Shown here piece by piece: positions 10,172-62,124 of a stretch of 64,000 nt of DNA. The stretch lies in the IMG/VR virus record IMGVR_UViG_3300031951_021456, positions 62,001 to 126,000 of that record; one strand, written 5' to 3'. A program made the position numbers and the translations under genes. The first letter of the stretch is position 1; the number at the start of each line of letters is the position of its first letter. The notes beneath the pieces were generated by a model that was not told the DNA's origin, did no database searches, and was given only the letters and a program-made list of their open reading frames with translations.

Positions 10172-11320
10172 ATGAATTTACTTAATGGCATTGTAGATAT
10201 ATTCCCATCAATAGAACCACAAAATTTTTTGGAAACTCCAAAAAGAATTAAACTTGGATTTGATCCAACAACAGATTTTTTACATTTAGGTCATGCTGTT
10301 CTTTTAAGAAAATTAAGGCAATTTCAAAATGAAAATCATACTCCTGTAATAATTATAGGTGACTTTACTGCAAGAATTGGAGATCCAACAGGAAAATCAA
10401 AAACTAGAAAACAATTAACCAAAGAAGAAGTAGAATTCAATACCAATGAATTTTTGAATACTCTTTCAAATTTTATTGACCCCGAAAAATCTGAAATTAT
10501 TTTTAATTCTAAACATTTAGAACAATTATCTCTATCTACAATTATACAATTACAATCATTGGTAACAGTAAATCAACTCCTAGCGAAAAGGGATTTTCAT
10601 CAAAGATTTGAATTACAAAGCCCTATCAGTTTGCATGAATTTATGTATCCACTACTTCAAGGATATGATAGTCATGTAATATCATCTGAAATAGAACTTG
10701 GAGGAATTGATCAAAAATTTAACATCTCAATGGGTAGAGATGTTCAAAGACATTTCAAAAATAAAAATGAACAAATTGGAATGTTAATGCCAATTTTATG
10801 TGGTACTGATGGTGCCAATAAAATGTCTAAAAGTTTGAATAATGCAATAAAAATTGATGAACATCCTTTAATAATGTTTTCTCAATTGGAAAAAATTCCA
10901 GATAATTTAGTAGATGAATATATTCTTCTACTCACCGACTGTAATTTGGGAGATTTTTCTCCAGATCCTAGAGAAAGGCAAAAACAAATGGCCTTTGAGA
11001 TTGTTTCAGAATTTTATGGTTCTGAAGTTGCTCTAAAGTCTATGAATGAATCTCAACAGATCGTTTTGTCTAATTCAAATATATCAGATGTCCCAGAGAT
11101 AGTTGTTTCACATTTGCAGTTTCCATTACCTCTTGCAACTTTATTGAGAGAAACTAAATTATCAGATAGTTCATCTGCAGCAAGAAGATCAATTCGTTCA
11201 GGTTGTATTAAATTAGATGGGATTAAAATTACAGATGAAAATATTATGGTTGATATAAATGATATTGAAAATAAAATTATAAGAATGTCAAAGAACTCTT
11301 TTCATCGTTTTGTCATGTGA
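10172..11320 (+). CDS. tyrS: Tyrosyl-tRNA synthetase
   Basis: GFDPT..LHLGH (HIGH), IGDFTARIGDPTG, YPLLQGYD, ELGGIDQKFN, KMSKS and a C-terminal S4-like ARRSIRSGCIKLDG. Confidence 0.95.
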   Translation: MNLLNGIVDIFPSIEPQNFLETPKRIKLGFDPTTDFLHLGHAVLLRKLRQFQNENHTPVIIIGDFTARIGDPTGKSKTRKQLTKEEVEFNTNEFLNTLSNFIDPEKSEIIFNSKHLEQLSLSTIIQLQSLVTVNQLLAKRDFHQRFELQSPISLHEFMYPLLQGYDSHVISSEIELGGIDQKFNISMGRDVQRHFKNKNEQIGMLMPILCGTDGANKMSKSLNNAIKIDEHPLIMFSQLEKIPDNLVDEYILLLTDCNLGDFSPDPRERQKQMAFEIVSEFYGSEVALKSMNESQQIVLSNSNISDVPEIVVSHLQFPLPLATLLRETKLSDSSSAARRSIRSGCIKLDGIKITDENIMVDINDIENKIIRMSKNSFHRFVM

Positions 11321-26085: not shown

Positions 26086-27630
26086 ATGTCACTTAAAATT
26101 TCCGAAAAAGCTAATCTTAATTATCTTGCAAAAGTTGTAAAACTAACAAATCTTAGAAAGCATCCAAATGCAGATAAATTACAGATAACCACTATTGATG
26201 GAAATAATATCATTACTGGCTTAGATGCTAAGGATGGTGATCTTTATGTGTATTTTTCTCTTGAAAGTTCAATCAATTTGAATTATATTTCATTTTCAAA
26301 TGGATTTAGGGAAAGCTCTTTAAATACTAATAAAGAAGTTGTTGGATTTTTTGAACCAAGAGGTAGAGTGCGGGCGATCTCTCTTCGGGGTGAAAAATCA
26401 TGTGGATATATTTGTCCAGTAAAAAATATCAATGAATGGCTTAATACCTTTACGTCTTTCAATATTACTGAAGAACATCAAGATGTAGAATTTGATATGA
26501 TTTGTGATACGGTAATGTGCGAAAAATATATAAATCGTGAAGCACTTCTTAAAATCTTAAAGGCCAATAAAACTCCAAAGGGTATTAAAAAATTAGCAAA
26601 AGAAACAAAGCTAATTGAAGGTCAATTCGCATTTCATGTTGATACTGCACATCTTCAAAAATATATCTATAAAATCAATCCGCATGATATCATTCATATT
26701 TCCAAAAAGCTTCATGGAACTTCTGCTATTGTTGGAAATATTTTGTGTAAGCGTAAATTATCGCTTAAAGATTCCATTGCAAGATTTTTTGGGGTAAATG
26801 TAAATGAAACAGAATATCAATTGATTTGGTCTTCTAGAACAGTTGTAAAGAATGGCAACTATTATTTGTCTTGGCAAGAAACCCTCTGGAAAAATTTTCT
26901 ATATTATCTCAGCAGTTACAAAAAACCATTTGAATCTTGGGTATCCTTGATTTTAGCTGAAGGTGACCAGAAAAGAGAAGAATTTTTTGGTGATTTGCAA
27001 TATCATAGATCAACTCCTTTGCAACTCTATAAAGATTTGCAAGAGTGGAGTAAAATTATCAAAAATCCACAAACATCTAATCATTATTATTCATATGATA
27101 TTTGGAGGGATGTTGCTATCCAGCTTGAAGATTTTCTTTATAAAGGAATGACATTTTATTGTGAAGTTGTTGGTTATACAAAGGAAGGAGCATATCTTCA
27201 AAAGGGTTATGACTATGGTTGCGATCTAGGAAACTTTGCAATTTACATCTATCGCATCACATATACAAATCCTTCAGGGAAGATATTTGAATTTTCAACT
27301 CAGCAAGTGAAGGCATATTGCAATAAACTTGGCCTAAACATGGTCCCAGAACTTTATTATGGGAGAGCAAAAGACCTATTTGACATTCCTGTAGATGATA
27401 ATTGGCATGATAATTTTATTGAATTAGTTAGCCAGAATTATCTTGAAAAGGATTGTGACATGTGTGTAAATAAAGTTCCAGATGAAGGTATTGTACTCCG
27501 TAAGGAAGATATTGACATTGAACCATACAAATATATAAGTTTTGCATTTAAACTGCGAGAAACAAAAAATGCAGATAATGGCGAAATTGATCTAGAAACA
27601 ATTGAATCTGAACAGTTAGGTGATGCATAA
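26086..27630 (+). CDS. RNA ligase, DRB0094/Rnl5-like with N-terminal tRNA-binding OB domain
   Basis: KHPNADKLQ (OB), RVRAISLRGEKSCG, SKKLHGTS (motif I), YCEVVG, VPELYYG and DEGIVLR. Confidence 0.8.
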   Translation: MSLKISEKANLNYLAKVVKLTNLRKHPNADKLQITTIDGNNIITGLDAKDGDLYVYFSLESSINLNYISFSNGFRESSLNTNKEVVGFFEPRGRVRAISLRGEKSCGYICPVKNINEWLNTFTSFNITEEHQDVEFDMICDTVMCEKYINREALLKILKANKTPKGIKKLAKETKLIEGQFAFHVDTAHLQKYIYKINPHDIIHISKKLHGTSAIVGNILCKRKLSLKDSIARFFGVNVNETEYQLIWSSRTVVKNGNYYLSWQETLWKNFLYYLSSYKKPFESWVSLILAEGDQKREEFFGDLQYHRSTPLQLYKDLQEWSKIIKNPQTSNHYYSYDIWRDVAIQLEDFLYKGMTFYCEVVGYTKEGAYLQKGYDYGCDLGNFAIYIYRITYTNPSGKIFEFSTQQVKAYCNKLGLNMVPELYYGRAKDLFDIPVDDNWHDNFIELVSQNYLEKDCDMCVNKVPDEGIVLRKEDIDIEPYKYISFAFKLRETKNADNGEIDLETIESEQLGDA

Positions 27631-27673: not shown

Positions 27674-28042
27674 GTGAAAATCTCCACCACCCATCAAAAA
27701 TTTGCAGATCAGTTAGGCGACCAAACTGCTCTAGAATACCCTGAACGTTTTCTAGGACCTAATTGGAAGGATGTTTTGAACTTCTGGATTTATTTGGACA
27801 CTTTAAGCGCCGAAAAGCGTAAGATAGTTAGTAAGCGCTATAGTGCTTTAGCTGATACTTCAGTAATAAGTTTAACTCATGGTTCTCACTGGGTTCTTAC
27901 ATGGAATGCTGCTCAAGATATTATAGGTAATGAATGTGTATGGTCAGCTTTCCGGGTGATTGGGAGCAGTGTGAACATTGAACTCATCGCTTCACATAAA
28001 CTTGAGTCTCTTAAGTTTCTTCCCCTGTTTTTGAATTTATGA
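27674..28042 (+). CDS. MKIS-family paralog 7
   Basis: GTG start; conserved blocks. Confidence 0.85.
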   Translation: MKISTTHQKFADQLGDQTALEYPERFLGPNWKDVLNFWIYLDTLSAEKRKIVSKRYSALADTSVISLTHGSHWVLTWNAAQDIIGNECVWSAFRVIGSSVNIELIASHKLESLKFLPLFLNL

Positions 28043-28392
28043 AAATCTCTAGAACACATAAAAGATTTGCCGATCATTTAGATGACCAAACTGCTTTAGA
28101 ATACCCTGAACGATTTCTAGGACCCAATTGGAAAGATGTACTGAACTTTTGGATTTATTACGATACTTTGAGTGATGATGTTCTTAGGTTAATTATTAGG
28201 CGCCATCAGGCTATAGAGGATTTAAATTATGTAAAGAATCTTTCTTGGAATGCTGCTGAAAATACTATAGGTGAGTATTATACGCGGGTAGCTTATGATG
28301 TTACACATTCTCTTAGTTATTTAACCTGCGAACTCATTGGTTCACATAAGCTTGAGACTCTCAATTTTCTTCCTTTGTTTTTGAATTTATGA
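28039..28392 (+). CDS. MKIS-family paralog 8
   Basis: ATGA overlap; conserved blocks. Confidence 0.85.
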   Translation: MKISRTHKRFADHLDDQTALEYPERFLGPNWKDVLNFWIYYDTLSDDVLRLIIRRHQAIEDLNYVKNLSWNAAENTIGEYYTRVAYDVTHSLSYLTCELIGSHKLETLNFLPLFLNL

Positions 28393-28847
28393 AACATCTT
28401 CCATCTCTGCTTATTTTATGTGGACTTCCTGGTTCAGGTAAGAGCACTTATTGTAAACAATATTCAAATTCAAATTTTGTAAGACTTTCATCAGATGATT
28501 ATATTGAAAAAGTGGCAAGAGACCAAGGAAAAACATACAATGAAGTTTTTTCATATGCAATTAGAGATGCTGATAGATATTTTAAACAAAAATTAGACTA
28601 TTATGCAGACACTGAATATAACATAATTATTGATAGAACAAATCTTACTGTAAAAACTAGAAGAAAGATTATCAACAAATTTAAAAATCATCAAAAGATG
28701 ATTGTATTTTTTAATGTGCCATTAAATACCATAAAAGAAAGAAACATCAGGCCTGGAAAAATATTTTCTGAAGAAATGTTAGATGATATGTATAGTAGAT
28801 TGGAAATACCAACAGAACTTGAAGCTCAAGTTGTGACAGTTAGCTAA
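28389..28847 (+). CDS. Polynucleotide kinase-like P-loop kinase (AAA_33)
   Basis: CGLPGSGKST, LSSDD, IIDRTNL and ERN.R. Confidence 0.85.
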   Translation: MKHLPSLLILCGLPGSGKSTYCKQYSNSNFVRLSSDDYIEKVARDQGKTYNEVFSYAIRDADRYFKQKLDYYADTEYNIIIDRTNLTVKTRRKIINKFKNHQKMIVFFNVPLNTIKERNIRPGKIFSEEMLDDMYSRLEIPTELEAQVVTVS

Positions 28848-28913
28848 CTGTCCAAAGGTGACAGACTACAAAGGTACTCAATGTTATGATATGTATTATT
28901 GATTCGGAAACTA

Positions 28914-29603
28914 ATGAATTGCGTTCTTGTTGGGGACATTCATTCTCAATTTTCAAAACTTCAAAATGCTCTTAATTACATTGAAAATACTATTGAGGAT
29001 TATTATATCATATTTTTAGGAGATGCATTTGATTCAAGATGTGAAGAATCAAATTCTGTTGGAGTCTACAAAACAATTAAAAATTTACAAGATAAAAACA
29101 AAGCAACTCTCATTCATTCAAATCATCAATGGAAACTTCAACGATATCTTTATGGAAATCCTGTAAGAATTGATCAATCTCTACAGAGAACTCTTGATGA
29201 TTTTCAGAGTTCAGATGTTACATCTATTGAACTTTTAACTTGGCTTGAGTCTTTACCATTTGCTTGTGCATTTAAAGATATTAATGAACAAGAATATCGC
29301 TGCGCCCATGCATATCATAGTTCTAAGCTTCTTATTCCTAGAACTTATGATGGCATACATTGTACTTATAAAGTAAGTGCAAAAATGCGAGATAAATTGA
29401 TTTATGGTGCATTATATGAGGGAACCCGGCTGTCATGGTGGGAACATGAATCAACAAATGAATGGATTCGGGTTTCTGGACATTATCATACTGTTGAAAT
29501 CTCATATACAAAAAAAGCATTGGTATTGGATTCATGTTGCGGGGATGAAAATGGTCTTCTCTCTGTTTTTAATGTAAACACATGGGAGATTTTTCAATTT
29601 TGA
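28914..29603 (+). CDS. Calcineurin-like metallophosphoesterase
   Basis: VGDIHS, FLGDAFD, SNHQ, CAHAY and SGHYH. Confidence 0.85.
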   Translation: MNCVLVGDIHSQFSKLQNALNYIENTIEDYYIIFLGDAFDSRCEESNSVGVYKTIKNLQDKNKATLIHSNHQWKLQRYLYGNPVRIDQSLQRTLDDFQSSDVTSIELLTWLESLPFACAFKDINEQEYRCAHAYHSSKLLIPRTYDGIHCTYKVSAKMRDKLIYGALYEGTRLSWWEHESTNEWIRVSGHYHTVEISYTKKALVLDSCCGDENGLLSVFNVNTWEIFQF

Positions 29604-30124
29604 ATATTAAGGATCATCTTATTGAAAGACATGTTGATCTAAATCTGCATAAGCCACTTCTAGATGATGAAAACATCTCTGCCATATTTTTATGCTATAA
29701 TTTATCTGGACAATTATGTGGCTATCAGAGATATAGGCCATTAGGAGATAAAAAGATTTTTAATAATCCATATCATGGTCGGTATTACACATATAGAAAG
29801 CAACAAACTGTTACAGTTTGGGGAGCAGAATCTTATTTCATTTCAAATGGCCCAATCTTTATAACTGAGGGAATTTTTGATGCAGCAAGAATTACAGAAA
29901 GAAATTGTAGTGCCTTTGCTATGTTATGTAATAGTCCACCAAAAGACTATAAAAATTGGCTCCAAATGTTAGCTAGACCAACTATTGCAATTTGCGATAA
30001 TGATCAGGCTGGCATTGAGCTTTCCAAGTTTACTGATTTTTATGAGATTGCTCCAGATGGTGATTTAGGTTCTTCTCCAAATGACTACGTTTCTTATCTT
30101 TTAACTAAATATGCCAGTCTTTGA
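29582..30124 (+). CDS. TOPRIM (primase-like) protein
   Basis: GYQRY, FITEGIFDA and CDNDQAG. Confidence 0.75.
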   Translation: MGDFSILNIKDHLIERHVDLNLHKPLLDDENISAIFLCYNLSGQLCGYQRYRPLGDKKIFNNPYHGRYYTYRKQQTVTVWGAESYFISNGPIFITEGIFDAARITERNCSAFAMLCNSPPKDYKNWLQMLARPTIAICDNDQAGIELSKFTDFYEIAPDGDLGSSPNDYVSYLLTKYASL

Positions 30125-30280
30125 AGTGTCCATTCTAAGTGAACTTTATTAAAATCTCTGCTAAGTTAATAAAACCTCCTGAGGAATTCTAAATTTATGA
30201 TTCGCGCTCCTCCCAATCAACCAACTGTCCACTCTCTCACCCAAACTCACAGATCTCTGTTATCTTATAGGGGTGAGAGA
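30123..30280 (+). promoter_or_regulatory. Tandem class A half-site promoters of the Ubl operon, with a 10-bp inverted repeat
   Basis: aagtgtcca near 30124 with taagtt downstream; aactgtccac 30223-30232 with tatctt 30261-30266; tctctcaccc 30233-30242 and gggtgagaga 30271-30280. Confidence 0.6.
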
Positions 30281-30324
30281 CAAAAACTCTCCACAAACCC
30301 TCAACTCTACAAAATAACTGCATT

Positions 30325-30594
30325 ATGTCTTCTTTCTCTAACGCTCTTCAGCAACAAGATCCTTCTGCTGTTGTGTATCTGGATGTGAACGGTAACGTGA
30401 TCGCTCTGATGCCCAACGAATACGAGGGGAAAACCCTGACCCAACTTTTCACCGACTTTGGTTCCCGACTCGGCACTAACGTTTCCCGCGTTACAAGCTT
30501 CACTATCAATGGTCAACAAGTGGGCGCCACCGCCGTTGTCCGCCCAGGCGAAACCGTTCGCGGCAACGTTCAAACTGACAGCAAGCAAGCCTGA
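30325..30594 (+). CDS. Ubiquitin-like (beta-grasp) protein
   Basis: Beta-beta-alpha-beta-beta pattern (VVYLDV, VIAL, GKTLTQLFTDFGSRLG, SFTING, VVRPGETVR) with a free tail TDSKQA; first gene of a JAB-E2-E1 operon. Confidence 0.75.
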   Translation: MSSFSNALQQQDPSAVVYLDVNGNVIALMPNEYEGKTLTQLFTDFGSRLGTNVSRVTSFTINGQQVGATAVVRPGETVRGNVQTDSKQA

Positions 30595-30610
30595 TCATCC
30601 TTCAGATTAA

Positions 30611-31774
30611 TTGACCATGAGTCTACCTAGTTTCTGGGTAGACTCTATTTCTTTATCTTTTATTATGACATCTTCTAGATTCCTAAATCTTTATGCTAAT
30701 TATCATGGTGATCAAACCGTTCTTGAGAATCCTGAGCAAGTTCTAGGACCAAATTGTAAAAGTATTTTAGACTTTTGGGAGAGCCTAGATGAAAGTGTTC
30801 TTAGAACTGAATTTGATGGTTCATTTGAGATCTATTCCTGTCCATGGGGGAAATATCTTAGGCCTTGCCGGGATCCTCTAGCTAATTCAGTAATAACAAA
30901 AGAAAATTATGATAAGTTTGAAGTCGCAGAAAATGTCAATAAAATTCCATCAGATATTTGGACTGCATGGATTCTTCTCTGTTTTCATTTTGTGGATAAA
31001 GTTCCAACAAAAATGGAAGTTCTTGTTCGTTTCTTGAGAAATGAAGAAAATCCATCTCAATTTATGGCAGTCGTCCCTAAACAATCTGTTACAGGGGTAT
31101 CAGTAAAAGTTGGAAACTTTAATGATTGCTGTAACCTCTTAACTGGAGAAAAATACACATCATATCCACCAGAAGGTTGGATTCCATGTGGTTCTAGTCA
31201 TAGCCATAATACATTGTTTTCTGGCTGGAGTGATGAAGATAATAAATATGAAATTCCAGATCCAGGGATTCATATTACGGTTGGGGAAATCAACTCAACA
31301 AAACGAACATATCAAATTGCCGCTTCAGTGACAGGAAATTTGAAAAGATTCAAGATTAATTATACTCATCTCATTGATACAACATTTGATGAAGACTCTA
31401 AATTTCATAAAAATGTATTAGAATATGTTGAAATTAGTACAACAAAATATCAATCATGGCCTACGAATGTTAATTATAAACCCCTGCAGCGAAAACTTCC
31501 TCCAGCCAAAACAACTTTCAGCAATATTGAAGAATATCGTGAGTTTATGTATGGGGAATTCACTGATTTTGATGCCTATAAAAAAATTAGTAGAGATCCA
31601 TTTCATTATAGCGATTCGTTTAGATATGTAACTAATACATTAGAGGTTCATCAAATAGCTGATAGCATTGAAGATTTTATCAAAGAGAATCGCAATGATG
31701 CTGATCAACTAGAAGAGTTGCAAAATACTCTGTCTTCATGTCTTATTGATCTTCAACTTGAACTAAACTCATGA
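30611..31774 (+). CDS. JAB/JAMM/MPN+ metalloprotease (deubiquitinase-like) with N-terminal MKIS-family segment
   Basis: E136...H197-S-H199-x7-S207-x2-D210 (GSSHSHNTLFSGWSDED), VVPKQSV and PGIHITVG. Numbering is from the TTG at 30611; the true start may be ATG 30617 or 30665. Confidence 0.9.
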   Translation: MTMSLPSFWVDSISLSFIMTSSRFLNLYANYHGDQTVLENPEQVLGPNCKSILDFWESLDESVLRTEFDGSFEIYSCPWGKYLRPCRDPLANSVITKENYDKFEVAENVNKIPSDIWTAWILLCFHFVDKVPTKMEVLVRFLRNEENPSQFMAVVPKQSVTGVSVKVGNFNDCCNLLTGEKYTSYPPEGWIPCGSSHSHNTLFSGWSDEDNKYEIPDPGIHITVGEINSTKRTYQIAASVTGNLKRFKINYTHLIDTTFDEDSKFHKNVLEYVEISTTKYQSWPTNVNYKPLQRKLPPAKTTFSNIEEYREFMYGEFTDFDAYKKISRDPFHYSDSFRYVTNTLEVHQIADSIEDFIKENRNDADQLEELQNTLSSCLIDLQLELNS

Positions 31775-32592
31775 CATCCATTCTTTTTCCCGAAACGCTT
31801 CCTTCTGGGCTTGTTAATCTATTTCCACCAAAAATCAGTGCAATTTCATATAATTATTCTGGAGATGGATTGCTTTTAAGGGCTCATATGAAAGATAAAT
31901 TTAGACGTTTGCAACAAGATGGTGAATATGCTGCAAACTTTCTTATGTGTCCCATGATTTTTCAGCAAACTTTGGAAATTAATAACCCTGAAACTAGATT
32001 TCAAGTAAGAGAAACTCCCAGCCATTATCCAGAAACCAGAGTATATTTACAGGGAACAAAAATAGTAGATAATAATATTTTTACAACAGTAAAGGATAAT
32101 ATGTCAAATGTATGTGATAGCACTTTTTTAGTTTGCTGGGGTGGAAATTTTAATGTAAAGAGTATAAAAACAATGAAAGGATTTATTGATCTTTTCTTTA
32201 ATAGTTATTTTAATGGTGATTATACTTCACCAAAGGCATTAAGGACATCTGAAGAAAATTGTATTGAGATTAGAGGTGAAATTGCAGAAGATTCTTTTGA
32301 GGCCACTAATTATAAGCTCATTTCAAAGGATGCAAATGCAATCTATACTATTCATAGGCATGATAATCCTTCCATTTTCTTTTGGCTTAAATCTGCCGGA
32401 TTTAATCCAATTGTAGAAAATTCTGACATTATGTTAGTTCCACTTAAGAGTGTTATCCTAACGGATAATGGAATTGATTATCCTGGATTTGTAACACCTA
32501 TTGATCTTTGCCGTAAGAAATGGTTCATTCTCCCTGATGGGAAATTTGTTGGGCAGATGTCCAGTTCACAGACTGTCCGTAACCCCACGTAA
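31771..32592 (+). CDS. Prokaryotic E2 ubiquitin-conjugating-like enzyme (family D / PRTRC protein B-like)
   Basis: SNVCDSTFLVC122WGGN followed by LFFNSYFNGDY matches the N[VT]..[IV]CWG...FF.S.FN.D pattern; ATGA overlap with the JAB gene. Confidence 0.75.
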   Translation: MTSILFPETLPSGLVNLFPPKISAISYNYSGDGLLLRAHMKDKFRRLQQDGEYAANFLMCPMIFQQTLEINNPETRFQVRETPSHYPETRVYLQGTKIVDNNIFTTVKDNMSNVCDSTFLVCWGGNFNVKSIKTMKGFIDLFFNSYFNGDYTSPKALRTSEENCIEIRGEIAEDSFEATNYKLISKDANAIYTIHRHDNPSIFFWLKSAGFNPIVENSDIMLVPLKSVILTDNGIDYPGFVTPIDLCRKKWFILPDGKFVGQMSSSQTVRNPT

Positions 32593-32639
32593 AATCCCTA
32601 AAACCTCCTAGATTAAAAAAGCCTACAACACACTCAAAA

Positions 32640-33353
32640 ATGTTTGATAAAGTTTATCTGCTCGGAATTGGCGGGGGTGGAAGTCACCTTGCTCCAGTTC
32701 TCGTCCAAACTCTCCGCTCACACCCAAAAACTTCATATAGTACAATCACCTTTATTGATGGTGATAAATTTGAGAAAAAAAACCAGAGCCGACAGCTTAT
32801 GGAGCCTAGCGATGTTGGCCTTAACAAGGCTACTTCAGTTGCTAGAATCTGTGAAGATCGTGGATTTTCTGATGTATATTCAATTGAAGATTATGCAAAC
32901 TTTGAGAATCTAGTTCCACTTCTTGAAGATGCTCAGTCTCCACTTGTGATTGCATGTGTAGATAACAATGCAACCAGGGCAGCTATCATTGATGCGATCC
33001 AAAAAGTTTGCATTGATGATAACAAGAAGAACTTCTTCTTTATCACACCTGGTAATAGTGATGCGACCGAAGACCCTAAGGGTCAAGTTTGTTGGTGGGG
33101 GGCAATCAACGGGAAAACTTATGGTCAAAACCCCAAAGAATATGATCTAGACATTCAAAATCCTGATGATTTTATTCCAAGGATTGGTGGATGTATGGAT
33201 ATGAGCGAATCTCATCCACAAGTTCTTTCAGCAAATCATCTTGCGGTGTCTCTCACCCTTTCTCTCGTTCAAACACTGTTGGATGAGAAATTGGATCATC
33301 GTAAGTCTCAAATTCGCTTCAACTGCTACAATCTTACCACTGCCATTTCCTGA
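32640..33353 (+). CDS. E1/ThiF-family adenylating enzyme
   Basis: LLGIGGGGS (GxGxxG), IDGDKFEKKNQSRQ, GLNKA, ACVDN, PGN..GQV and candidate catalytic C185 (GGCMDMSESHPQ..AN). Confidence 0.92.
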   Translation: MFDKVYLLGIGGGGSHLAPVLVQTLRSHPKTSYSTITFIDGDKFEKKNQSRQLMEPSDVGLNKATSVARICEDRGFSDVYSIEDYANFENLVPLLEDAQSPLVIACVDNNATRAAIIDAIQKVCIDDNKKNFFFITPGNSDATEDPKGQVCWWGAINGKTYGQNPKEYDLDIQNPDDFIPRIGGCMDMSESHPQVLSANHLAVSLTLSLVQTLLDEKLDHRKSQIRFNCYNLTTAIS

Positions 33354-33358
33354 AAATC

Positions 33359-33829
33359 ATGTCTGACAATCCTCAAAACGTTAAAGTCAATGCAAGAGTT
33401 CTTAAATTTGATCAACTTCTTCAAGGCATTGAAGAATACGCAAGTTCAATCCGTACTCGTACAGATTCTGCTCTGAGCGAGGATAACATCTGCTCCCGTA
33501 TTGAAGAGATCTTTGGGGAAGAAGAATCTTTCAATAGGCTAGTTGCAGCTATTGTTACTCGTATTGGCATTAATAGCATCGTTAATGGTGTTGTTCGCCA
33601 AACGCAAGGAGACATTAACGAGAAGATTGATGCTACCATTAGCTCAAAACTCTCAGAAGAACCCCTACTTTCCACTGTAAATAGGCTCATTCAAATGCAC
33701 GCCAATGGTCAGGAAATTTCAATTCCTGATATCAATCAAAATCGCAAAATTGAAGACATTCCATTGGATAGTCCAGAAAATATTGCAGAGGTCTGTAGGC
33801 TTCTAGCTGGGGCTGACGCAATTCTCTGA
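33359..33829 (+). CDS. Alpha-helical hypothetical protein, last gene of the Ubl operon
   Basis: Starts 5 nt after the E1 stop and ends just before the terminator. Confidence 0.7.
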   Translation: MSDNPQNVKVNARVLKFDQLLQGIEEYASSIRTRTDSALSEDNICSRIEEIFGEEESFNRLVAAIVTRIGINSIVNGVVRQTQGDINEKIDATISSKLSEEPLLSTVNRLIQMHANGQEISIPDINQNRKIEDIPLDSPENIAEVCRLLAGADAIL

Positions 33830-33839
33830 TTCATTTTGA

Positions 33840-33864
33840 GGGGAGAATTAATCTCCCCCTTTTT
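33840..33864 (+). terminator. Intrinsic terminator closing the Ubl operon
   Basis: ggggag-aattaat-ctcccc-cttttt. Confidence 0.65.
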
Positions 33865-33874
33865 GTTTAAAACC

Positions 33875-34255
33875 ATGAAAATCTCCATTTCACATCAACA
33901 TTTTGCAAATTGGTTAAAGGCTCAAGATGCTCTAACTAATCCAGAAAAATATCTTGGCCCCAAATGGAAAGATGTCCTGAACTTTTGGATTTATTTGGAT
34001 TCAGAAGAGTCTGAGTGGGATGAGCGGCGTTGCACCGCTACTCTGCGTGCCGCTTATAATATTATAGGCTCTGAGTGGGATGAGCGGCGTTGCATCGCTA
34101 CTCTGCGTGCCGCTTATAATATTATAGGCTCTGAGTATGGATATGCAGCTTTTAATGCTCATGTTGGTTATGCTGAAGGGCATGCAACCTGTGAACTTAT
34201 CGCTTCACATAAACTTGAGTCTCTCAGTTTTCTTCCCCTGTTCTTGACCCCATGA
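33875..34255 (+). CDS. MKIS-family paralog 9 with internal 20-aa duplication
   Basis: ATG 33875; SEWDERRC(T/I)ATLRAAYNIIG twice; stop codon inside the dyad at 34252. Confidence 0.85.
   Translation: MKISISHQHFANWLKAQDALTNPEKYLGPKWKDVLNFWIYLDSEESEWDERRCTATLRAAYNIIGSEWDERRCIATLRAAYNIIGSEYGYAAFNAHVGYAEGHATCELIASHKLESLSFLPLFLTP
34010..34136. repeat. 60-bp tandem duplication (1 mismatch) plus 7-bp partial third copy
   Basis: 34010-34069 versus 34070-34129. Confidence 0.95.
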
Positions 34256-34571: not shown

Positions 34572-35508
34572 ATGTCTTTAAGTACCATTGAACGTCTATC
34601 TCCATTTTCTTCAAGTTTCACTTGGGATGATTACACAAATGAACTCTATCGGTTTTCTGATGATTATGGATATCTTTCGGTTGAACAGATGAAAAATGAA
34701 ATAGAACGGTTTAGGATGTTCAGTTTTACTGATAAAATTAATTTTACAATGACTGTTGAGGATTTCGTTGACTTCTTATTTGATGCAAACTCCAATCACA
34801 CCTGATCCTAATTATCTTTACAACTTATATGAAGAAGAAGAACCAGAGGACCAACCGGAAGATGCCGAGTTTGATGATGAATCAAACTGAAGACATTTTT
34901 CTAAATGATGATTTTGGTTCACAGCTTCATGAATTTTTAGATCCAGAACTTTTACAAATTTTAGACAATTATGAATTTGACGAAAACTGACTTTAATGAT
35001 ATTCTCAAAACCCTTGATGAAGCTAAAACCGCAGATGAACTCTTAACTGCACTTAATAAAATTGGACACAATGAAAACTGTCCCAATGAGGCTTTACAAG
35101 ATCAACCAATGACCTATTCTTGAAATGTAACTACCACTTACACCATGATCAATCTCAAACCAACTGAAAATACCATGAGCACCTCTGAAGAGGCTGCTCT
35201 TATTCTCTCTGATATTTTTGATGGAGATCTTGTCGCACAACAAGCAGCCATTGAAGAATTCTCTCTGTTTACTGATGAAGACATTTTGGACCAAGAAGAT
35301 GCTCTTTATGATCGTTATCTCCCTGTCAGGGAGGTTTCTTCTATCCAAGAGTAATTCCCGCTATAGCATTCATGCAAATGGGTGTATAGTAAATGTAGGA
35401 GACTTAAATTCAGCCTACATGATTGCATACAGAATGGCCAGCTCTTTTGGCCATTCTTTCATTTATGACAATCTTTTCAATAAAACAATTGATGAGTATT
35501 TTGAATGA
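34572..35508 (+). other. Cluster of very small, mostly acidic ORFs (34572-34805, 34783-34890, about 34874-34990, about 35174-35354, others)
   Basis: Examples: MQTPITPDPNYLYNLYEEEEPEDQPEDAEFDDESN and MSTSEEAALILSDIFDGDL... Confidence 0.5.
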
Positions 35509-35909
35509 TCTATTCTAAAAGACATTTAGCATTTTCTGAGTTATTTCCATCAGCATTAACACAACCAGAAGAATTTATAGGTCGTAACTGGAAAAATGTT
35601 TTAAATATTTGGATTTTCCTGGATACTATAGATTGTGCTCAATTACATAGAATATATTCAATCTGCTTTCATCCATGTTATGATTATAAATATAGATCAC
35701 TATTGTCTCAATATTCTTTTGAAGAATGCGAATATAGCAGTGATATTTATAATTTAACTCCTAGTGGATTTGATTATCTTGTATTAGAGCTAATATTAGA
35801 ACAAACATTGATGGAAAATCAAATACCCTTGAGGTATCTTCCAAATCTATGCGATTTTATGCCACTTTTTAAATCGTCCATGGATGGCTCAAATAGCTTT
35901 CAGCCATAG
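35505..35909 (+). CDS. MKIS-family paralog 10 (divergent)
   Basis: ALTQPEEFIGRNWKNVLNIWIFLDTI...LELI...YLP. Confidence 0.7.
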   Translation: MIYSKRHLAFSELFPSALTQPEEFIGRNWKNVLNIWIFLDTIDCAQLHRIYSICFHPCYDYKYRSLLSQYSFEECEYSSDIYNLTPSGFDYLVLELILEQTLMENQIPLRYLPNLCDFMPLFKSSMDGSNSFQP

Positions 35910-61582: not shown

Positions 61583-62124
61583 TTTTGATTAGGTATTCTT
61601 TTGGGATTTTGTCTGGGTTTCTTAGGATTTCTTATTGTTGGTTGAGGATTTCTATCAATAGATTGATTTGCAACATCTTTATCAACCATGACGTAAGAAC
61701 CCTTCATATCATAGTGTGCATCTGGCACTCTAACTATTCTCTCACCTTTTTTAATTGCCTCAGCAGATTGAACATGTGGACTTATTTGTTTAGCTCTTTG
61801 GGTTAATTCGTCGCCCGAATACTTTTTAGATAATGATTTCACCTTTTCTGTGTAGTCTTTTTTTGATGTTGTGCTTTTTATCTTTGGATTTACGATTTTT
61901 AGATCAACCCTAGATTTCCCATACTCTCCCCCAATTCTAGAAGAGGGTGTAGTGTAAACTGTTTTATGCCAGTATTGTGCATCTCTAGGGTGATAAGCTC
62001 CAGTTGAGCCGGGTTCAAAACCCTTTTGTAAGATTTTATCTCTACTTTCTTTAGATGTATAATGAGCAGTTCTTAAGATTCTCAGATTTTTTGCTTCTTC
62101 AATGAATTCATTAAAGGTTTTCAT
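61579..62124 (-). CDS. Putative capsid-packaged ADP-ribosyltransferase-like protein
   Basis: N-terminus MKTFNEFIEEAK; AHYTS..KILQKGF..TVYTTP. Confidence 0.45.
   Translation of the reverse strand: MKTFNEFIEEAKNLRILRTAHYTSKESRDKILQKGFEPGSTGAYHPRDAQYWHKTVYTTPSSRIGGEYGKSRVDLKIVNPKIKSTTSKKDYTEKVKSLSKKYSGDELTQRAKQISPHVQSAEAIKKGERIVRVPDAHYDMKGSYVMVDKDVANQSIDRNPQPTIRNPKKPRQNPKRIPNQK

Follow-up and report, generated by a model that had tools for sequence, protein, structure and literature searches.

The PRTRC system (TIGR03734-03741), which corresponds to the operon type "6d" of Iyer, Burroughs and Aravind (PMC1779556), is found on plasmids and ICEs and combines a stand-alone small ubiquitin-like protein (Ubl), a JAB peptidase with an extra N-terminal domain, an E2-like Cys protein and a short ThiF-type E1 in the order ParB-E-C(Ubl)-F-B(E2)-A(JAB)-ThiF. 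The system is functionally uncharacterised, and no biochemical data exist for it. In contrast, the type II BilABCD (CEHH/6C) antiphage ubiquitination system, which is encoded by bacteria and not by phages, provides the experimental model for JAB pre-processing of a Ubl whose conserved Gly is followed by a removable tail, for conjugation dependent on the E1 and E2 Cys residues, and for erasure by the JAB (PMC10557695). In type II CBASS (Cap2/Cap3), E1, E2 and JAB chemistry is likewise used for protein conjugation in phage-host conflict; however, the E1 and E2 are fused, the substrate is the CD-NTase itself, and there is no free Ubl. Phages of the lambda/T1 type also encode a beta-grasp protein (gpI) paired with a JAB (gpK), but this pair has no E1 or E2, sits in the tail module, and its JAB is fused to NlpC/P60 (PMC1779556).

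Here, we analyzed a 64,000-nucleotide stretch (the window; positions 62,001 to 126,000 of IMG/VR record IMGVR_UViG_3300031951_021456) of an uncultivated marine phage contig of 247,932 bp, which carries cyanophage-like tail fibre, helicase and RNA ligase genes. A preliminary description of the window had proposed a complete phage-encoded ubiquitin-like conjugation system (Ubl-JAB-E2-E1-ORF) within a tightly packed operon with its own promoters and terminator, and our analysis confirmed this observation with three exceptions, given below. Every motif quoted in that description is present at the quoted residue numbers and is conserved. Five tightly packed genes are present at the stated coordinates on the plus strand (Table 1), and the same genes in the same order recur in about 20 distinct viral or metagenomic contigs (40-370 kb) at 24-55% protein identity, which is far more than chance. 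None of 50,697 GenBank phage records has this arrangement. A terminator-like hairpin with a T-run (33840-33858) sits 11 nt after the last stop codon, and comparable hairpins follow the fifth gene in most related loci. The cassette is a distant, previously undescribed phage branch of the PRTRC system.

Table 1. Features of the cassette, in window coordinates
Feature	Coordinates	Strand	Length	Remarks
Start of conserved upstream mini-ORF, M-I-R-A-P-P	30197-30214	+		RAPP codons 30203-30214; candidate regulatory leader or arrest peptide
Leader hairpin	30269-30301	+		About 25 nt upstream of the modifier start codon; conserved at nucleotide level
Ubiquitin-like modifier precursor	30325-30594	+	89 aa	Predicted beta-grasp core (about residues 15-82); flexible tail ending D-S-K87-Q-A
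Intra-operon hairpin plus T-run	30619-30655	+		12-bp stem occupying 30619-30645; resembles an attenuator or mRNA-end structure
JAB/JAMM metallopeptidase	30665-31774	+	369 aa	From ATG 30665; mechanical ORF 30611-31774, 387 aa; JAB-N-like domain, JAMM domain, helical C-terminal region
E2-like protein	31771-32592	+	273 aa	Candidate catalytic Cys122; start overlaps the JAB stop by 4 nt (ATGA)
ThiF-type E1 (adenylating enzyme)	32640-33353	+	237 aa	Candidate catalytic Cys185
Fifth gene	33359-33829	+	156 aa	Candidate adaptor, specificity factor or substrate
Terminator-like hairpin plus T-run	33840-33868	+		7-bp G+C-rich stem; closes the operon

The first exception concerns the proposed promoters, which are not supported, as 18 sigma-70-like hits were found against 16.3 +/- 4.0 in shuffled sequences and none of them lies in the 200-nt upstream spacer. 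Second, the JAB gene most likely starts at ATG 30665 rather than at TTG 30611, since the intra-operon hairpin occupies the intervening region and the homologues lack the first 60 residues. An equivalent stable hairpin, in most loci followed by a T-run, is present at the same place in 13 of 15 related loci, with no sequence conservation. The third exception is the C terminus of the modifier, which had gone unnoticed in the preliminary description. While the Lys corresponding to K87 is invariant in 135 of 135 modifiers and is followed by Gly in 131 of them, with 0-3 trailing residues, the modifier of the window ends K-Q-A, and two of its three closest relatives, which end K-R and K-N, lack the Gly as well. 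Canonical adenylation of a terminal Gly cannot be assumed for this phage.

The modifier, for which 238 homologues were found, was modelled by AF2 (pLDDT 80.9) with the topology b-b-a-b-b-b. In a Foldseek search of the PDB, all top-50 matches were beta-grasp proteins at a probability of 0.97-1.0, and the top hits (TGS, SUMO, ubiquitin, ISG15) reached a probability of 1.0 and TM scores of 0.5-0.68. Like PRTRC protein C, the family ends in Lys-Gly with an optional short tail; however, no Prok_Ub hit was obtained in Pfam, and sequence similarity to Prok_Ub was not significant by hhalign.

In the JAB protein, E136, H197-S-H199, S207 and D210 (387-aa numbering) of the E…HSH-x7-S-x2-D motif are invariant in 41 family members, which satisfies the definition of JAMM/MPN+ metallopeptidases. 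Of these members, 39 hit Pfam Prok-JAB (best E value of 1.6e-6), although the window protein itself gave no Pfam hit and DUF2016 (JAB-N) was not detected in it. Alignment by hhalign to PRTRC protein A gave a 92% probability (E value of 5.6e-7 over 154 columns), spanning the N-domain and the JAMM motif. Compared with PRTRC, the JAB has an extra C-terminal region of about 130 aa, and in this phage it also carries an N-terminal module of about 45 aa borrowed from a neighbouring paralogue family. In four loci, group I introns sit exactly inside the JAMM motif, as expected for a conserved, functionally constrained site.

The E1 shows the residues of E1-like adenylating enzymes (ThiF/MoeB/Uba), as G9xG11G12xG14, D40-G-D42, N48, R51-Q52, K63 and D108 are invariant in 23 distinct sequences and C185 is the only invariant Cys. 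The protein matched Pfam ThiF above threshold (E value of 1.4e-11; 44.5 bits against 28.1), and profile hits in the PDB went to TcdA, UBA5, Uba1 and the NEDD8 E1. The best NCBIfam hit was TIGR03736 PRTRC_ThiF (E value of 1.3e-12), but at 47.6 bits against a cutoff of 144.75. Nevertheless, hhalign to PRTRC ThiF gave a 98.4% probability (E value of 4e-15) and aligned C185 with the invariant PRTRC Cys. The E1 thus constitutes a homologue, but not a member by the curated threshold, and no other protein of the cassette reaches a PRTRC or Pfam family threshold.

In the E2-like protein, N113, C122-W-G, N148 and D150 (the latter two within the FFNSYFNGD stretch), D245, W251 and Q262 are invariant in 41 members, and hhalign to PRTRC protein B (Pfam Prok-E2_D) gave a 70% probability (P value of 4e-5) and a score of 41.5, whereas thirty control comparisons scored 10-18. 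The N…C-W-G loop aligned with the N-V-x-x-x-G-x-I-C-x-G loop of Prok-E2_D. However, PF14460 was reached only faintly, by 2 of 41 members at an E value of 0.0095, and no His is invariant in the family, although an absolutely conserved downstream His was described for 6d E2s. The protein is also larger than the PRTRC E2, with extra N- and C-terminal domains. The AF2 model (pLDDT 92.7) has four strands (62-105), then the N113…C122 loop, then two helices, and the spacing and context of N…C resemble the HPN…C loop. In the UBC-like fold of E2s, the catalytic Cys lies on the loop after a four-strand meander and is preceded by a conserved Asn. Yet this confident model had no significant structural neighbour in the PDB or BFVD; UbcH5A scored only an E value of 0.88 (TM 0.24/0.37) and the best hit overall an E value of 0.13, so that the E2 fold was not confirmed structurally.

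The fifth protein, always encoded last in the cassette, evolves fast, with only 15-53% identity across clades and a length varying from about 110 to 182 aa. It had no match in Pfam, PHROGs, PADLOC or the PDB and no similarity to PRTRC protein E or F.

Collectively, profile comparison ties the E1, the JAB and the E2-like protein to the PRTRC lineage, the E1 and JAB over nearly their full length. The locus differs from PRTRC in its gene order, in its location in a jumbo phage, and in the absence of ParB, protein E and the alpha-hel2 protein (F) from the cassette and its flanks. The cassette shares with Bil the separate Ubl, E2, JAB and E1 genes and the Gly-plus-tail arrangement of the modifier family. 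PADLOC models matched only the E1, and weakly (BilD, E value of 5.8e-7 over about 95 residues) and none of the other four proteins; BilD is about 450 aa long and has a separate CYS domain, no CapH/CapP-like regulators are present, and neither BilB nor the Bil E1 structures, although contained in the PDB library searched, appeared among the listed matches of the E2 model. As for type II CBASS, we found separate E1 and E2 genes, a dedicated Ubl, no nucleotidyltransferase or effector in the cassette, and only weak E1-domain matches to E1-E2 models. Unlike the lambda/T1 pair, the cassette includes an E1 and an E2-like protein and sits among replication and RNA-metabolism genes.

With moderate confidence, we interpret the locus as a phage-borne cassette for ubiquitin-like protein conjugation and deconjugation, a very divergent branch of the mobile-element 6d/PRTRC lineage, with conjugation as the best-supported mechanism. 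In this view, the hairpin and T-run after the modifier gene would let modifier mRNA outnumber the enzyme mRNAs. The JAMM peptidase would trim the short tail after the conserved Lys-Gly and could also cleave conjugates, as suggested by the 0-3-residue tails and by the experimentally shown behaviour of BilC. The E1 would adenylate the exposed C terminus with ATP and take it onto Cys185, whereupon the modifier would pass to Cys122 of the E2-like protein and then to lysines of target proteins, with the fifth protein probably acting as adaptor or first target. Of this scheme, our analysis established the hairpin structure and the conserved residues of the E1, whereas the effect of the hairpin, the processing and erasing, the adenylation chemistry and the entire transfer step are inferred. 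As the cassette is a fixed, syntenic part of a jumbo-phage lineage and its nearest relatives sit in plasmid establishment and replication modules, we think that it most likely modifies phage or host proteins as part of the infection programme.

The interpretation offered in the preliminary description was thus partly supported. The viral nature of the element and the complete candidate write/erase set were borne out, and the assignment to E2 family D and the PRTRC analogy were right in direction. However, no evidence bears on targets, on the suggested takeover of the host or on activity against Bil or CBASS, and the proposed location in an early region is plausible from the neighbouring genes only.

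Counter-defence is a less supported, and in our view unlikely, alternative, in which the phage would erase host conjugates with its JAB, or flood or mis-tag components of host Ubl-based immunity (Bil, type II CBASS, Bub) with its own modifier. In support of this, the known bacterial E1/E2/JAB/Ubl systems are antiphage (PMC10557695, PMC10097602, PMC11601596), the cassette lies among likely host-interaction and RNA-repair genes (RNA ligase, kinase, metallophosphatase and, in related loci, ADP-ribosylglycohydrolase), and the fast-evolving fifth gene fits an arms-race interface. Nevertheless, an eraser would need only the JAB, yet the full five-gene set is conserved, no component other than the E1 resembles Bil or CBASS models, and the nearest relatives are PRTRC proteins, not defence-system proteins. 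Still more doubtful is an exclusion system that would work like Bil, tagging structural proteins of competing phages to block superinfection. Phages commonly carry defence systems, and Bil is reported to conjugate a Ubl to phage tail proteins (Hör et al. 2024); however, the cassette is a fixed component across a divergent lineage of large, apparently lytic phages and not a sporadic accessory island, and the PADLOC result and the lack of CapH/CapP-like regulators do not favour this reading. Least likely is a sulfur-carrier or other non-conjugating pathway of the ThiS/MoaD-ThiF type, in which the modifier would be thiocarboxylated to make a modified nucleoside or cofactor, the JAB would only mature it and the "E2" would be an unrelated Cys protein. 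In support of this, the E1 is short and ThiF-like with no UFD or separate Cys domain, the E2 fold is unconfirmed and JAB/ThiS/ThiF sets without conjugation exist (PMC1779556); however, no rhodanese, cysteine desulfurase or sulfurtransferase was found in or beside the cassette, the C terminus is Lys-Gly, or non-Gly in four members, rather than Gly-Gly, and the third gene is specifically related to Prok-E2_D around its invariant Cys.

A bolder possibility, which we advance only tentatively, is that a whole lineage of jumbo phages runs its own ubiquitin-like tagging cycle during infection, using an E2 with a fold elaboration not yet seen in any solved structure, with its expression set by a leader peptide of the ribosome-arrest type (M-x-R-A-P-P) and an intra-operon attenuator, and with the modifier activated at a non-glycine C terminus in the clade of this phage. 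The upstream mini-ORF and the hairpin after the modifier gene are both new features. In the four closest loci, all four third-codon positions of R-A-P-P vary, while none of the eight first and second positions does, and this is the only RAPP in all six frames of the window; RAPP and RGPP are published ribosome-arrest motifs (PMC10951233, PMC12992588). The leader is also better conserved at the nucleotide level than the approximately 50%-identical proteins would lead one to expect, and in its hairpin RNAalifold predicted 12 pairs, of which seven are invariant and two keep pairing through changes on both sides.

The stretch analyzed here is part of IMG/VR contig UViG_3300031951_021456, which is 247,932 bp long. 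The window has about 34% G+C and carries nearly all of its genes on the + strand. The genes include a tail-fibre protein related to those of cyanophages, helicases, an RNA ligase and a homologue of tyrosyl-tRNA synthetase (PHROG 9270, E value of 8e-77). No tRNA genes were found in the 64-kb window. The window is therefore a piece of a large uncultivated phage. It carries five + strand ORFs arranged as a cassette, in which the second and third genes overlap by 4 nt and the last stop codon is followed by a terminator-like hairpin with a T-run. The observation made in the preliminary description, a tightly packed set of genes for a ubiquitin-like modifier (Ubl), a JAB peptidase, an E2-like protein and an E1, held and proved to be conserved. 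In contrast, the promoters that it had assigned to the operon were not confirmed, as sigma-70-like matches were not more frequent than in shuffled sequences (18 against 16.3 +/- 4.0) and none of them lay in the 200-nt upstream spacer.

Coordinates of the cassette, its neighbours and the related features discussed in the text (L numbers denote related phage contigs)
Feature	Sequence	Coordinates	Strand	Size or remark
Tyrosyl-tRNA synthetase homologue	window	10172-11320
RNA ligase, P-loop kinase, metallophosphatase and primase/TOPRIM-like gene	window	26086-27630, 28389-28847, 28899-29603, 29582-30124		directly upstream of the cassette
Small-protein paralogues flanking the cassette	window	27674-28042, 28039-28392, 33857-34255, 35505-35909
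Conserved leader with mini-ORF	window	30190-30301
Conserved leader with mini-ORF	L002	3660-3800
Conserved leader with mini-ORF	L003	515-650
Conserved leader with mini-ORF	L005	2790-2920
Invariant leader hairpin	window	30269-30301
Modifier gene	window	30325-30594	+	89 aa
Hairpin between modifier and JAB genes	window	30619-30645		12 bp
JAB gene	window	30611-31774	+	387 aa as the mechanical ORF; start most likely ATG 30665
N-terminal module fused to JAB	window	30665-30800		first ~45 codons
E2-like gene	window	31771-32592	+	273 aa
E1 gene	window	32640-33353	+	237 aa
Fifth gene	window	33359-33829	+	156 aa
Terminator-like hairpin with T-run	window	33840-33858
Paralogue with internal tandem duplication	window	33836-34255		just downstream of the operon
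Group I intron in JAB gene	L028	5405-5641
Group I intron in JAB gene	L030	5432-5672
Group I intron in JAB gene	L031	5414-5654
Group I intron in JAB gene	L035	6212-6485
E2-family gene with four-Cys insert	L006	6969-7985
E2-family gene with four-Cys insert	L008	7038-8126

To examine the distribution of the cassette, we searched protein collections and found only 5 close relatives of the E2-like protein, whereas 183 relatives of the JAB protein and 238 relatives of the small modifier protein were retrieved. An exhaustive HMM search revealed 43 E2-family clusters at 50% identity. Reading the DNA around these hits yielded about 20 distinct contigs of 40-370 kb, which were analyzed with HMMs on called ORFs, and in all of them the five genes stand in the same order: small protein, JAB, E2-like, ThiF and small variable protein. 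Three more divergent loci (L032, L033 and L035), located on contigs of 125-371 kb, keep JAB, E2 and E1 but have no recognisable modifier gene; their JAB proteins are 480-540 aa long, and L032 shows the order E2-JAB-E1. Initial scans of IMG/VR with narrow patterns had found only the contig that carries the window. None of the 50,697 GenBank phage records has the JAB or E2 family: the search gave no nucleotide match and no tblastn hit for E2 or JAB, and only weak, partial hits for E1. So far, the cassette is known only from uncultivated phages.

Scans of the five window proteins against Pfam, PHROGs, PADLOC and NCBIfam recognised only the E1, which matched Pfam ThiF (1.4e-11), TIGR03736 PRTRC_ThiF (1.3e-12, a score well below the cutoff of that model) and PADLOC BilD (5.8e-7). 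Profile searches against PDB gave hits of the E1 to TcdA, UBA5, Uba1 and the NEDD8 and SUMO E1s. In 23 distinct family members, the residues G9, G11, G12, G14, D40, D42, N48, R51, Q52, K63, D108 and N109 are invariant, and Cys185 is the only invariant cysteine. Profile-profile comparison with PRTRC ThiF proteins taken from plasmids gave 98.4% probability over 198 columns and aligned Cys185 with the invariant PRTRC cysteine.

The JAB protein of the window itself received no Pfam hit; however, 39 of 41 aligned family members hit Prok-JAB (best E value of 1.6e-6), and the full JAMM signature (Glu, His-x-His, Ser, Asp) is invariant. Profile searches of the JAB alignment against PDB sequences gave nothing, but an hhalign comparison with PRTRC protein A (DUF2016/JAB-N plus Prok-JAB) yielded 92% probability over 154 columns that cover both the N-domain and the catalytic motif. 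Three results suggested that translation most likely starts at the ATG rather than at the beginning of the mechanical ORF: the homologues lack the first 60 residues, a 12-bp hairpin occupies the region just upstream of this ATG, and the first ~45 residues encoded from it constitute a module shared with a family of small paralogous genes that flank the operon. In four related contigs (L028, L030, L031 and L035), the JAB gene is interrupted by a group I intron (Rfam RF00028, 55-83 bits). In L030, where both exons were translated, the intron lies exactly between the H-S-H and N-T-M codons of the JAMM motif. The JAB gene of the window has no intron, and a search against Rfam found no known RNA in the window.

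The E2-like family has eight invariant positions: N113, C122, W123, N148, D150, D245, W251 and Q262. Its consensus N-V-x-x-x-G-x-I-C-W-G aligned with the N-V-W-x-x-G-x-I-C-x-G loop of PRTRC protein B, which is Pfam Prok-E2_D. The profile-profile score was 41.5 (70% probability, P of 4e-5), while nine unrelated alignments, 20 column-shuffled versions and a reversed version scored 10-18. Homology to Prok-E2_D is therefore supported, whereas family membership by the Pfam threshold is not, because only 2 of 41 members gave faint hits. A profile search of the E2 alignment against PDB sequences gave nothing, and a scan of genome contigs for PRTRC protein B returned a single locus. AlphaFold2 produced a confident model (pLDDT of 92.7 and pTM of 0.90) with a four-strand meander followed by the N113…C122 loop and two helices, plus extra N- and C-terminal beta-rich parts. 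Nevertheless, Foldseek found no significant neighbour of this model in PDB (best E value of 0.13; UbcH5A, E value of 0.88) or in BFVD, so that a classical UBC fold was neither confirmed nor excluded. The E2 assignment thus rests on sequence-profile homology, the active-site loop and the gene context and not on a demonstrated fold match. Most family members are 320-380 aa long and carry in the N-terminal domain a four-cysteine (C-x2-C … C … C-P) insert, probably a zinc ribbon, as seen for example in the related contigs L006 and L008; the clade of the window has lost it.

For the modifier, a 135-sequence alignment gave an AlphaFold2 model with a pLDDT of 80.9, a b-b-a-b-b-b topology and a disordered tail. 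All top PDB matches of this model were beta-grasp proteins, namely, TGS domains, SUMO, ubiquitin and ISG15, at probability 1.0 and TM of 0.5-0.68, while the comparison of the modifier sequences with Prok_Ub was not significant. Lys87 is invariant in 135/135 sequences and the next residue is Gly in 131/135, followed by 0 (48 sequences), 1 (25), 2 (61) or 3 (1) further residues. This is the pattern of a Ubl precursor trimmed by a peptidase, as shown experimentally for BilA and BilC (PMC10557695), and PRTRC protein C ends in the same way, G-T/A-K-G with an optional tail. However, the window protein is one of the four exceptions and ends K87-Q-A; of its three nearest relatives, two end K-R and K-N and the third ends K-G. 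The 'VRG' sequence is not a conserved site, and a cleavage site after the 'RG80' dipeptide was rejected, because position 80 is Gly in only 71/135 sequences.

The fifth gene is always last in the cassette. Its product varies in length from about 110 to 182 aa and shares only 15-53% identity between clades. No relative was detected in Pfam, PHROGs, PADLOC or, by profile search, among PDB sequences, and comparison with PRTRC protein E and protein F revealed no similarity.

Inspection of the noncoding regions showed that a stable hairpin, in most loci followed by a T-run, lies between the modifier and JAB genes in 13 of 15 loci examined, although its sequence is not conserved. We infer that the structure itself is under selection and that it may represent a partial terminator or mRNA end that would let the modifier, a consumable, be made in excess over the enzymes. 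In the clade of the window (the window, L002, L003 and L005), the 5′ leader of the modifier gene is conserved at the nucleotide level more strongly than the ~50%-identical proteins would suggest. It contains a mini-ORF that starts M-(I/P)-R-A-P-P, in which all four third-codon positions of R-A-P-P vary and none of the eight first and second positions does. This is the only RAPP in all six frames of the window, and it is followed by an invariant hairpin. In addition, the related contig L028 has an upstream ORF containing N-R-G-P-P. RAPP and RGPP are published ribosome-arrest motifs that bacterial proteomes avoid (PMC10951233, PMC12992588), and therefore the leader may encode a phage arrest peptide. 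In the published cases, however, the motif sits at the C-terminus of a longer peptide, and ribosome stalling by this six-residue version remains a hypothesis.

The composition of the cassette matches operon type 6d of Iyer et al. 2006, with Ubl, JAB with JAB-N, E1, E2 lacking the classical His and a fast-evolving accessory protein (PMC1779556), and this type is the PRTRC system of plasmids and ICEs. Nevertheless, the phage cassette differs from it in gene order, in the absence of ParB, protein E and the alpha-hel2 protein F, in the lack of an invariant His following the E2 Cys, in the larger E2 and JAB proteins and in being carried by a phage. Bil, CBASS and Bub share the chemistry but not detectable family membership. 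A lambda-type tail-assembly Ubl/JAB pair was ruled out by the genomic context and by the presence of E1 and E2. Our literature searches found no description of a phage-encoded Ubl/E1/E2/JAB cassette; two jumbo-phage reviews contain no mention of JAB, ThiF or Ubl, and the two occurrences of 'ubiquitin' in one of them are unrelated to such a cassette.

Collectively, these data suggested, with somewhat better than even confidence, that the cassette performs genuine Ubl conjugation and deconjugation, in which the modifier would pass from E1 Cys185 to E2 Cys122 and then to target lysines, with JAB maturing the modifier and erasing conjugates. The conserved gene order, the invariant residues and the profile homologies are results of our analysis, while activation, transfer, trimming and deconjugation are inferred from them. 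The main reservations are the unconfirmed E2 fold and the missing C-terminal Gly in this particular phage. The interpretation offered in the preliminary description was supported in part. As for the biological role, the cassette could serve modification within the infection programme, counter-defence or exclusion. Ubiquitin-like conjugation in bacteria has so far been shown only as host immunity against phages (CBASS, Bil and Bub), and the mobile-element PRTRC version has had no known function since 2006, nor was one characterised in the papers we found. A complete, conserved and clearly selected cassette on the virus side would show that phages also use protein tagging, would offer a compact five-gene system to reconstitute and could shed light on what PRTRC does on plasmids. 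Furthermore, the family includes a confidently modelled E2-like protein with no structural neighbour in the libraries searched and natural variants whose modifier lacks the C-terminal glycine, and both bear on how E1/E2 chemistry evolved.

The genes surrounding the cassette showed further features. Of the four genes listed in the table as lying directly upstream, the first three (RNA ligase, P-loop kinase and metallophosphatase) look like an RNA-repair set, and related loci add an ADP-ribosylglycohydrolase (L003 and L005) or an enzyme of the CCA-adding/poly(A) polymerase family (L006 and L008). The multi-copy family of small proteins that flanks the cassette here and in L002 and L003 shares the N-terminal module E-N-P-E-x-F-L-G-P-N-W-K-D-V-L-N-F-W and the C-terminal motif F-L-P-L-F-L and gave no database match. 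In this phage alone, the N-terminal module is fused to the JAB peptidase. Finally, the paralogue just downstream of the operon contains an internal tandem duplication of about 20 residues (W-D-E-R-R-C-x-A-T-L-R-A-A-Y-N-I-I-G-S-E, present twice).
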